DNA of 64,000 bases, taken from the NCBI GenBank assembly GCA_977016875.1, contig CDRNST010000382.1, positions 868,001 through 932,000 on the forward strand, read 5' to 3'. The notes beneath the pieces are model-generated. The model was not told the DNA's origin and did not search any database. It saw nothing but the letters and a program-made list of their open reading frames with translations. The first letter of the stretch is position 1. The number at the start of each line of letters is the position of its first letter. Made by a program: the position numbers and the translations under genes. Of this stretch, positions 28,828-30,558 are shown in pieces. Source of the stretch: Pavona decussata (lineage: Eukaryota).

Positions 28828-30558
28828 ATGGCTGCAAAACCAGACAGTGAAAATTGTTCAGAAAGTGGCAGCATGAACCAGCTTGACGTATTTTTGAAGG
28901 AAATAGCAGAAACAAAAGCAAAGTTTCCAGACGACCAAAACGCTCGCATTATTCACGACGAGTTGGATGATATCATACAGGAAGCCGTGCTAGACCTTTC
29001 TGGTAAATACCGATTGTTCCACAATGCTAGTATCCAACAAGGTGGTAGTATGGTTGATGGTACCAAGATTGGACAGCCTGATGAATTCGACTATGTCATT
29101 GTTCTACCTGCGCTTCAAGAACAGTTGGTTACAATGAAAGAGGGCGAGCCCTTTTATGCCAACTCTTACGATATCAACATGCAGTCGACAAAGCTCCCTT
29201 TGAAGATGAAGGACCTCACATTCATGGACGATGTTCTTTGTCCTGAGTGGTGCGATGAAAACGAAAACAAAAAGAGGAAAAGTCAACAACTTATTTTTAA
29301 GGATGGAAAAAGTCCTTGGAGAGATGAAATCGCATCAATGGTGTCTGTGGCAATTTATCGATCCCTGAATGCTTCACTTGGAAAATACCAAAAGTGGCAA
29401 TATGTTGCAAGATTAAAATGTCCTTCTGGGAAAACCTATCTTCAAATTCTCAAGTTTTCTTGTGATGGGTTTGAGACATTTGTCTCAGTTGACATTTGCT
29501 TGGCCATAAGGATTCCCTACACGTCAGCTGATCAAGATCCTTTGCAACTCATTTTTGAGTTCTGGTCAATCAATGCTGTATCGTGCACCAGGAGATCAGA
29601 ATCCACGTGGGAAACTACCGCAGTGAGGTCACTAGAAATTAATTCAGTGGAAAAACAATGCTACCGTGTTGTGAAGTACCTCATTCAAACATTTCTTGAA
29701 TCATACTTTGACATCTACACGATGAGTTACAAGATAGTGATAGAAACGTACACACTGAAGACCATGTTCTTGAAAGTCCTGATGGAAAGTGAGACGAGAT
29801 GGGAATCACACCAACTTGGCGTGAAGGTCCTAGAGATCCTTGGATTGATTAAGCAGGATCTGAGCACAGTAGTACAACAGAGTACGTGTAATTCTAGCTC
29901 CATTCCACTCATTCACCCTCTGAGAGTTTCCCTCGATTACTGCCTGCATCCTGTCTCTGCCGAACCAGCCTTGTTCCCAAGATCTAAGTTGACCTCAACC
30001 AAAGCAAATAGAGAAGCAATTTTTCAAAGGCCTAGTGCTATTAAAGACCAAGTATCAACTCTCATCGACCTTCTTCTCATGGTTAGGGACACTGAGAAAG
30101 GCAGAGAGCATTTCTTGTCGCAAATTGAGTCGATCGAAAAGCTGCGTGTTCGCTTGAAAAATGGAACCTACCAGATTCCCATAATGGAAGCGCTTCAGGA
30201 GAGAAATGATGCCAGTGGTGTCTACAACAACTTTCTGACGATATGGCATGTTCTTCACAGAAACGATTTCAAGAGCTATATGCGAAAGACGAAGATTGGC
30301 ATTGTGGTTCATCCTGAAAGTAAAGCTGATGACTGCATCGTGTTCCCCAAAACGTTTCCTCTCCTTGGATTTCTTAATTGCCGCCTGTTTGATGAGGGTG
30401 ATCAAAACCTTGACGAGAGTGGCACAGAAATTTTAGAGATGGACGTATTTGAACATGCTGATCGCAACCAAGTGGTTTGTTGGAATGTAAATGATTCCGT
30501 GAATCTAAAGGTCATTATACAAGAAGAACTTTGTTCATTTTGTGCTTCAAGTCGATAA
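28828..30558 (+). CDS. cGAS-like receptor (cGLR), Mab21-family nucleotidyltransferase, 576 aa, uninterrupted ORF
   Basis: GGSMVDGTKIGQPDEFDYVIV (GS loop plus E86/D88), VSVDICLAI (D222), RRSESTWE, CYRVVKYL, ETYTLKTMFL and W..HQLG match cGAS/Mab21 motifs in order. Confidence 0.9.
   Translation: MAAKPDSENCSESGSMNQLDVFLKEIAETKAKFPDDQNARIIHDELDDIIQEAVLDLSGKYRLFHNASIQQGGSMVDGTKIGQPDEFDYVIVLPALQEQLVTMKEGEPFYANSYDINMQSTKLPLKMKDLTFMDDVLCPEWCDENENKKRKSQQLIFKDGKSPWRDEIASMVSVAIYRSLNASLGKYQKWQYVARLKCPSGKTYLQILKFSCDGFETFVSVDICLAIRIPYTSADQDPLQLIFEFWSINAVSCTRRSESTWETTAVRSLEINSVEKQCYRVVKYLIQTFLESYFDIYTMSYKIVIETYTLKTMFLKVLMESETRWESHQLGVKVLEILGLIKQDLSTVVQQSTCNSSSIPLIHPLRVSLDYCLHPVSAEPALFPRSKLTSTKANREAIFQRPSAIKDQVSTLIDLLLMVRDTEKGREHFLSQIESIEKLRVRLKNGTYQIPIMEALQERNDASGVYNNFLTIWHVLHRNDFKSYMRKTKIGIVVHPESKADDCIVFPKTFPLLGFLNCRLFDEGDQNLDESGTEILEMDVFEHADRNQVVCWNVNDSVNLKVIIQEELCSFCASSR

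Follow-up and report, generated by a model that had tools for sequence, protein, structure and literature searches.

A conserved acidic cGLR of the coral Pavona decussata whose trigger may not be nucleic acid

Introduction

Acidic members of the family of cGAS-like receptors (cGLRs), relatives of the immune DNA sensor cGAS, abound in corals, in insects and in other animals, and to our knowledge no ligand has so far been found for any of them. Those cGLRs that sense double-stranded DNA (dsDNA) or double-stranded RNA (dsRNA) have an isoelectric point (pI) above 8.5 and long, positively-charged ligand surfaces, while the acidic coral proteins Pd-cGLR (pI 5.0) and Sp-cGLR2 have been modelled with negatively-charged grooves and probably have ligands other than nucleic acid (Li et al. 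2023, PMC9980059); the same study lists 42 cGLRs for Stylophora. An acidic cGLR clade in Drosophila has attracted the same prediction (Cai et al. 2023 preprint). The present work concerns a gene for a 576-residue acidic cGLR in a 64,000-nucleotide stretch of the genome of the coral Pavona decussata (the window: positions 868,001 to 932,000 of the forward strand of contig CDRNST010000382.1, assembly GCA_977016875.1). The reading of this protein that is preferred here, to which we give an even chance, is that of a working cGLR which is not triggered by DNA or RNA bound on a basic groove, and which answers instead to a cationic or protein ligand or is controlled by an insertion and a C-terminal module of its own.

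The acidic orphan cGLRs (Pd-cGLR, Sp-cGLR2 and the Drosophila clade) form a descriptive class, not a clade, and the window protein shares with them an intact catalytic site, a pI of about 5–6 and the lack of a zinc thumb; with the coral members it also shares its coral origin and, by proxy only, a predicted non-basic ligand surface (PMC9980059; Cai et al.). It is nevertheless a different gene from either coral protein. The accessions are XP_027049992.1 for Pd-cGLR, XP_022802921.1 for Sp-cGLR2 and XP_022805259.1 for the window protein's Stylophora orthologue, and their difference excludes orthology to Pd-cGLR or Sp-cGLR2. The window family differs further from the acidic orphans in its conserved insertion and its five-cysteine module, both kept across Cnidaria. 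XP_022805259/60 and XP_031563819 were unmatched in parts of the supplements to Li et al. (PMC9980059), parts which do not by themselves prove absence from that study.

Three other described systems bear comparison. Sp-cGLR1 from Stylophora pistillata (structure 8gjy), a dsRNA-activated 3'3'-cUA synthase, is the best solved sequence match, has the same GS and PDEFD motifs, and is likewise cnidarian and without a zinc thumb; it differs in its K/R-rich spine, in its length of 376 residues, and in having neither the insertion at residues 354–404 nor the C-terminal module. Human MB21D2 (7lt1), which has a neutral groove and no known ligand, resembles the window protein in having no thumb, a non-basic groove and an intact active site, in carrying additional sequence at its C-terminus and in being strongly conserved (PMC8410604). 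Its extension, however, is a single helix packing on the spine, where the window protein has a 115-residue cysteine module together with an internal insertion, and no sequence orthology between the two is detectable. Vertebrate cGAS has in common with the window protein the bilobed fold (Z about 15), the catalytic triad, the GS loop and a basic helix past the thumb position, but differs from it in possessing an H-x5-CC-x6-C zinc ribbon, a basic spine and a basic disordered N-terminus, and in having no extra C-terminal module.

Results and discussion

Fold and catalytic site

On sequence evidence alone the identity of the protein is marginal. Its score against the Pfam Mab-21 model is 22.0 bits, where the cut-off is 24.1; several of its orthologues have precomputed matches to PF20266 (Mab-21_C), the nearest paralogues pass the thresholds of both PF03281 (Mab-21) and PF20266, and the jellyfish orthologue is matched by neither. 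The best solved relative by sequence, Sp-cGLR1, is found at E 0.012, which becomes E 2e-7 when the family profile is used. An AlphaFold2 model was built from 31 orthologues and is of moderate quality, with a mean predicted local distance difference test score (pLDDT) of 60. Searched with Foldseek, this model retrieves human cGAS at E 5.7e-7, with Sp-cGLR1 and MB21D2 also among the top ten (E 6e-7 to 1e-5). VIA-align superposes the predicted model on cGAS with Z 15.2 and a root-mean-square deviation of 3.4 Å over 291 aligned residues, pairing model residues 18–437 with residues 145–507 of mouse cGAS, which is the whole catalytic domain; against Sp-cGLR1 it gives Z 14.3, pairing model residues 18–435 with residues 10–376. 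The cGAS-like bilobed fold, made up of a spine helix, the beta-sheet core of the nucleotidyltransferase (NTase) and a helical C-lobe, is thus present in a model of moderate confidence. The structural alignments run to model residues 433–437, where the cGAS catalytic domain and Sp-cGLR1 reach their C-terminal ends, and they place the end of the Mab21 core at about residue 440.

The residues expected of an active enzyme are all in place. G73, S74, D85, E86, F87 and D88 are invariant in 31 sequences, namely the window protein and 30 orthologues, and the motifs of this segment (residues 72–88) align to GS...PDEFD of 8gjy, 7lt2 and 4jlx. S220, D222 and C224, on the strand that bears the third catalytic acid, are equally invariant, and the GS loop and catalytic acids are kept also in the protein of the jellyfish Sanderia. 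R255, S257 and S259, which we take to be the counterparts of the nucleotide-binding R376, S378 and S380 of human cGAS, are invariant or nearly so in the family. Given the fold match, and because the GS loop and the three catalytic acids do not vary, the product of this open reading frame (ORF) is a genuine cGLR with an apparently competent active site.

Distribution and selective constraint

A word-based search returned 49 homologues, most covering 100% of the query, which include proteins from Oculina patagonica, Stylophora pistillata (XP_022805259.1) and Actinia tenebrosa (XP_031563819.1, 60% identity). In an exhaustive profile search of 1.84 billion representatives, 160 proteins were found at E <=0.001. 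Only two of these are full-length, one from a coral and the other from the scyphozoan jellyfish Sanderia malayensis (552 bits, profile positions 12–574); the remainder are either fragments of the same family or other cGLRs which match in the NTase core only, with scores not above about 110 bits; the nearest of them that has a name is Nematostella XP_001629304.1. Compared pairwise with three coral orthologues, the gene has a ratio of non-synonymous to synonymous substitution rates (dN/dS) of 0.20–0.25, and compared with Actinia one of 0.11; no segment is relaxed, and the values are those of a gene under purifying selection. The order SNF2/ZRANB3, cGLR, rhodopsin-type G-protein-coupled receptor (GPCR) is kept in another coral (locus L002). 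A pseudogene or a retrocopy artefact is ruled out by the intact ORF, its expression (see below), the dN/dS of about 0.2 and the conserved synteny. The sequences as a whole describe a slowly evolving orthologous group, full-length in stony corals, a sea anemone and a scyphozoan jellyfish, and this slow, one-to-one pattern contrasts with the lineage-specific expansions that are typical of coral cGLRs.

One older gene model from Stylophora pistillata, PFX16260.1 (1456 residues), shows the cGLR orthologue fused to an adhesion-type GPCR named 'GPR133'. This fusion is probably an annotation merge of neighbouring genes.

Such conservation could also be expected of a non-immune protein, either a Mab21-fold scaffold or a constitutive housekeeping enzyme, for which MAB21L1/2 and MiD49/51 offer precedents. 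A single full-length orthologous group extending from corals to jellyfish, under purifying selection and with conserved synteny, is unlike the fast-evolving, lineage-expanded cGLRs of immunity, and the structural score of the model against MiD49/51 (Z 13.9) is almost at the level of that for cGAS. Against this, the GS loop and the three catalytic acids have stayed invariant for more than 500 million years, which is to be expected only if nucleotidyl transfer matters, and the catalytically inactive Mab21-fold proteins known to us are without an intact triad. The closest relatives by sequence, too, are cGLRs, namely Sp-cGLR1 and cnidarian Mab-21 proteins. We consider a scaffold or housekeeping role to be unlikely on this evidence. 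A working cGLR that would make a nucleotide messenger is suggested by the invariant catalytic residues and the purifying selection.

Charge of the spine and of the ligand groove

An earlier note on this DNA had described the protein as acidic, with roughly 80 D/E residues to 65 K/R, and a scripted count returns exactly these totals (38 D and 42 E against 39 K and 26 R). The pI is 5.33 for the whole protein and 4.99 for the NTase part (residues 1–340). This acidity is conserved: the pI lies between 4.98 and 6.14 in all 31 orthologues, between 4.83 and 6.76 over residues 1–350, and is 5.97 in the jellyfish protein. The string previously proposed as the spine helix, DDQNARIIHDELDDIIQEAVLDL, corresponds to residues 35–57 (nucleotides 28930–28998), and AlphaFold2 does predict a long helix there, at residues 37–60, preceded by one at residues 18–29. 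The helix at 37–60 is taken to be the spine because the structural alignment begins at residue 18, opposite the start of the cGAS catalytic domain.

The segment that holds these two helices (residues 17–65) has a mean net charge of −3.6 in the family, with a range from −6 to 0. When the helix 37–60 is drawn as a helical wheel, the conserved acidic positions 44, 45 (an invariant E), 52 and 56 fall about 140 degrees from the conserved hydrophobic face, and should for that reason lie on the exposed side; D47 and D48 are restricted to Pavona decussata and its close kin. A hand count on the HMMER alignment of the spine stretch gives about 12 K/R and 6 D/E in Sp-cGLR1 versus 6 K/R and 10 D/E in the window protein. 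Since the spine carries conserved acidic residues in place of K/R, dsDNA or dsRNA would be unlikely to activate the protein directly by binding to a basic groove. The pI, overall and in the core, lies far below that of the nucleic-acid-sensing cGLRs, and the spine is net acidic, the charge of the groove surface being judged here only by sequence proxies (charge maps and the helical wheel).

The absence of a zinc thumb carries no comparable weight. The earlier note had pointed out that the protein lacks this element and has SLEINSV in its place, which is correct: the string occupies residues 268–274 (nucleotides 29629–29649), and the motif H-x(4-7)-CC-x(5-8)-C, searched for as a regular expression, occurs in none of the 31 sequences. 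The loop at residues 257–275 is of constant length (19 residues) in the family, with no conserved Cys or His and a mean net charge of about zero, and in a profile alignment with porcine cGAS residue 272 onward stands opposite the last thumb cysteines and the helix that follows them. The further suggestion, that a missing thumb hints at a trigger other than nucleic acid, does not hold. The zinc ribbon is an insertion of vertebrate cGAS, and neither human MB21D2 nor the dsRNA sensor Tc-cGLR nor the insect cGLRs, Dm-cGLR1 among them, have it (Slavik et al. 2021, PMC8410604). Because Tc-cGLR, Dm-cGLR1 and Sp-cGLR1 all sense dsRNA without a thumb, its absence is uninformative; it is normal for invertebrates and proves nothing.

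Nor is acidity very unusual in this part of the family, being the norm among the nearest relatives. In 86 nearest cGLR relatives with the core covered, the median core pI is 5.85, with 54 of the 86 below 6 and nine above 8.5. Many relatives share the acidic spine pattern, the mean net charge being −1.8 for the acidic relatives and +0.6 for the basic.

The basic elements of the protein are the ground for a rival reading, in which it is a nucleic-acid sensor, most likely of dsRNA, that binds its ligand through K276, R280, K283, R150/K151 and the basic insertion at residues 354–404, with the net negative charge confined to other surfaces and to the C-terminal module. One such element is the first helix of the C-lobe (residues 274–292). 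K276 is conserved in at least 90% of the family and R280 and K283 in all of it, the helix has a net charge of +1 to +3 in every orthologue, and it aligns to the K-x3-K-x2-K-Y-L helix of porcine cGAS; we take its three basic residues to be K407, K411 and K414 of human cGAS, two of which contact DNA. The insertion has a pI of about 9, the C-terminal module supplies 14 conserved acidic columns against 6 basic ones, and dsRNA sensing is considered the older specificity of cGLRs (PMC9980059). The helix 274–292, however, is as basic in the acidic relatives as in the basic ones (its correlation with pI is 0.007), so that it says little about the class of ligand. The spine, the main contact for nucleic acid, has a net charge of −4 and an exposed face with conserved acidic residues, and the core pI is far under the value of more than 8.5 found in known nucleic-acid sensors. 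Taken together, these observations make a nucleic-acid sensor of this kind improbable.

The patch KKRKS had been singled out in the earlier note as the main evidence against a non-nucleic-acid trigger. It is rightly counted on that side, but does not weigh heavily, since only half of it is conserved and its context is acidic: at least 80% of the family is basic only at positions 150–151, position 148 is acidic in at least half of the family, and the surrounding segment (residues 140–166) has a mean net charge of −0.8. As a conserved nucleic-acid-binding patch KKRKS was rejected, being only half conserved.

Several of these observations weigh against the reading preferred here, of a groove that does not bind nucleic acid, and are best considered together. 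The groove appears to be mixed, with an acidic spine on one side and a basic helix on the other: the wall opposite the spine has the conserved K276, R280 and K283, and R255/R256 is invariant. Positions 150–151 are conserved as basic, and the basic insertion could contribute to the binding of nucleic acid. In the core the conserved charged columns are nearly balanced (32 acidic versus 30 basic), so that variable positions must account for some of the net charge. An acidic groove is moreover a description that rests on sequence proxies and a mediocre model, and the pI of a whole protein is a mere correlate of its class of ligand.

The insertion and the C-terminal module

What sets the family apart is the pair of additions to the core, the insertion at residues 354–404 and the five-cysteine module at residues 461–576. 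The insertion is modelled as disordered (pLDDT 29–47), yet S368, H374, P375, E379–L382, R385 and S386 are invariant, its dN/dS is 0.13–0.25 and most orthologues have it at a pI of about 9. Its appearance is that of a conserved linear motif or of a regulatory segment. In the C-terminal module C503, C518, C551, C569 and C572 are invariant, and the spacing C-x14-C ... C-x17-C-x2-C is retained in the jellyfish protein. A profile search found the module in no other architecture among the 1.84 billion representatives, and Pfam, NCBIfam and PADLOC gave no meaningful match for it (nor, in the case of NCBIfam and PADLOC, for the whole protein). Confidence in the module is low in the first AlphaFold model and stayed low, at a pLDDT of 58, when the last 179 residues of the protein were modelled again with the jellyfish sequence added; fold searches with that low-confidence model returned nothing better than E 1.3 (Foldseek) and Z 3.1 (VIA). 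A KA1-like fold was considered on the strength of matches to 9m86, 5iri, 3ost and 3t4n at Z of about 2.1, and was rejected, these values being at the level of noise for a model of low confidence.

Cytosolic fatty-acid-binding proteins (FABPs) are beta-barrels in which about 130 residues make up ten strands and a helix-turn-helix lid, and one search result raises the possibility that the module is such a barrel, which would make the protein a lipid-gated cGLR. The module profile gives a weak match to myelin P2 (FABP8), end to end over residues 1–121 of 133, at E 0.0037 and 20 bits, with W473 and F481-x2-Y484-M485 corresponding to the FABP signature of the first strand and helix; with the full family profile the match has E 0.14. 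On the other side, variants of P2 are the sole FABPs matched, none of the 31 family members matches the Pfam lipocalin/FABP model, the module falls some 20 residues short of the barrel and can be aligned only with a gap of 12 residues, and its five invariant cysteines are lacking in FABPs. The models also contain few strands, and neither Foldseek nor VIA-align retrieved an FABP with them, the model being of low confidence. We regard a lipid-gated barrel as very improbable; a zinc site in the module is another candidate. More generally, the five-cysteine module could be a zinc- or redox-sensitive domain, a lipid-binding domain or a partner-binding domain.

Sensing might reside in these additions and not in the classical groove, if the module and the basic insertion hold the acidic spine in an autoinhibited state from which some cue other than nucleic acid releases it, so turning on the synthesis of cyclic nucleotide. 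On this view the strong conservation of the family and its one-to-one orthology would suggest a signal that is itself conserved and possibly endogenous, and not a fast-evolving molecule of a pathogen. We think this particular arrangement decidedly unlikely. A part for the insertion and the module in control of the enzyme is in any case speculative, and is suggested by their conservation and by their exclusivity to the family.

The nearest paralogues (P0071 and P0073, from Nematostella and a coral) are acidic too, and share a different conserved C-terminal tail of about 100–150 residues. This suggests a branch of cnidarian cGLRs in which one core has been combined with alternative C-terminal modules.

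Proposed mode of action

A trigger other than nucleic acid seems to us somewhat more probable than the opposite. In the mechanism that we infer for enzyme, product and trigger alike, a ligand or partner would engage the protein's back-face groove and order the GS activation loop, upon which, by homology, a cyclic nucleotide second messenger would most likely be made, probably for STING. The charge of the spine, together with the published correlation between pI and ligand, would speak against switching by DNA or RNA bound on a basic groove; control might more likely be exerted, speculatively, by a cationic or protein ligand or through the insertion 354–404 and the C-terminal module.

The interpretation offered in the earlier note is in this way partly supported. 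Its step from acidity to a non-nucleic-acid trigger agrees with the published pI data, and the acidity proves to be conserved and to include the exposed spine; its weaknesses are that the link is a correlation and that a basic helix faces the spine. What did not survive is the claim of an undescribed sensing mode, since Li et al. and Cai et al. had already drawn the same inference for acidic cGLRs of corals and Drosophila.

Gene structure, expression and neighbourhood

The window, in which 450 letters are N, has the base composition of AT-rich animal DNA (36–43% G+C), and the cGLR gene is the largest complete ORF of its neighbourhood. Coordinates of the gene, of the features of its product and of neighbouring elements are collected in Table 1.

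Table 1. Features of the cGLR gene and its surroundings, in window coordinates (aa, residues of the cGLR)
Feature	Position	Strand	Evidence
RanBP-type zinc finger ORF	7975..11004	-	ORF, domain match
Short ORFs with reverse-transcriptase-like peptides	27013..27735	-	ORF peptides
5' untranslated start of coding exon	28793..28827	+	sequence and contig starts
cGLR coding sequence, single exon	28828..30558 (incl. stop)	+	ORF list, homologues, fold, RNA contig, dN/dS
N-terminal and spine helices (aa 17-65), main element of the cGLR primary ligand surface, net acidic	28876..29022	+	AlphaFold2, charge map
Activation loop G72-G73-S74 and catalytic acids E86, D88 (aa 72-88)	29041..29091	+	invariance, alignment
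KKRKS basic patch (aa 148-152)	29269..29283	+	position confirmed
Strand with third catalytic acid D222 (aa 219-227)	29482..29508	+	strand predicted 216-229
Loop replacing the vertebrate cGAS zinc thumb (aa 257-275, incl. SLEINSV)	29596..29652	+	alignment, motif search
First C-lobe helix (aa 274-292), basic K276, R280, K283	29647..29703	+	conservation, alignment
Family-specific C-lobe insertion (aa 354-404), basic	29887..30039	+	pLDDT, conservation, pI
Last Mab21/cGLR core helices (aa 405-445)	30040..30162	+	helices 405-421, 423-444; structural alignments
Private C-terminal module (aa 461-576)	30208..30555	+	invariant cysteines, exclusivity
High-copy interspersed repeat	30611..31020		contig depth
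Inverted copy of the repeat	31701..32062		78% identity
Rhodopsin-family GPCR ORF	37192..38142	+	ORF, 7tm_1 match

The start codon is fixed at 28828 because an in-frame TAA lies at 28807–28809, and upstream of it position 28792 is the end of a polypyrimidine tract with an AG acceptor. Contigs from two sequencing runs of different studies (X1 and X5) begin to match exactly at 28793, carry 65–93 unmatched letters 5' of that point, cover the ORF region only, and have zero coverage across the unique flank at 27800–28737. A metatranscriptome RNA-seq run (X14) contains a collinear contig of 1976 nucleotides with about 94% identity to the gene. Our reading is that the gene is expressed and has a spliced 5' untranslated exon and one coding exon, contigs being of a nature that cannot prove the splice. 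A further contig (L004) is collinear genomic sequence and gives no information on the position of the 5' untranslated exon. A single coding exon is also what the orthologues have in the coral of locus L002 and in Actinia tenebrosa, a sea anemone (L001).

Just upstream of the gene, short ORFs on the minus strand encode reverse-transcriptase-like peptides and look like a decayed fragment of a retrotransposon without long terminal repeats. Just downstream is an interspersed repeat of high copy number, with an inverted copy about 700 bp further on; contig depths there sum to between 1e3 and 1e5, compared with about 20 over the gene, and loose ends and internal joints are frequent. Beyond it lies an intronless ORF for a 316-residue rhodopsin-family GPCR (7tm_1, E 5e-14). 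A similar GPCR is found downstream of the cGLR orthologue at L002, which makes the neighbourhood syntenic. Far upstream in the window, a 1009-residue ORF encodes RanBP-type zinc fingers (E 1e-9), and at the matching position L002 has a fragment of a gene with an SNF2 domain. About 7 kb downstream of its cGLR orthologue, L002 (18548–21728) also has weak Pfam matches to Pox_VLTF3 and to Pox_A32, a packaging ATPase, which suggests an integrated giant-virus-like or Polinton-like element.

Conclusions

The finding reveals no new mode of sensing, but adds a member of unusual architecture to a class of cGLRs for which a non-nucleic-acid hypothesis has already been published. As a single, expressed orthologous group with intact catalytic residues, in which the single coding exon makes for easy cloning and the acidic spine, the conserved insertion and the cysteine module offer defined features for mutation, the family may be a convenient entry point to the question of what acidic cGLRs sense. 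The trigger, if found, would reveal what a cGLR of the non-nucleic-acid kind senses.

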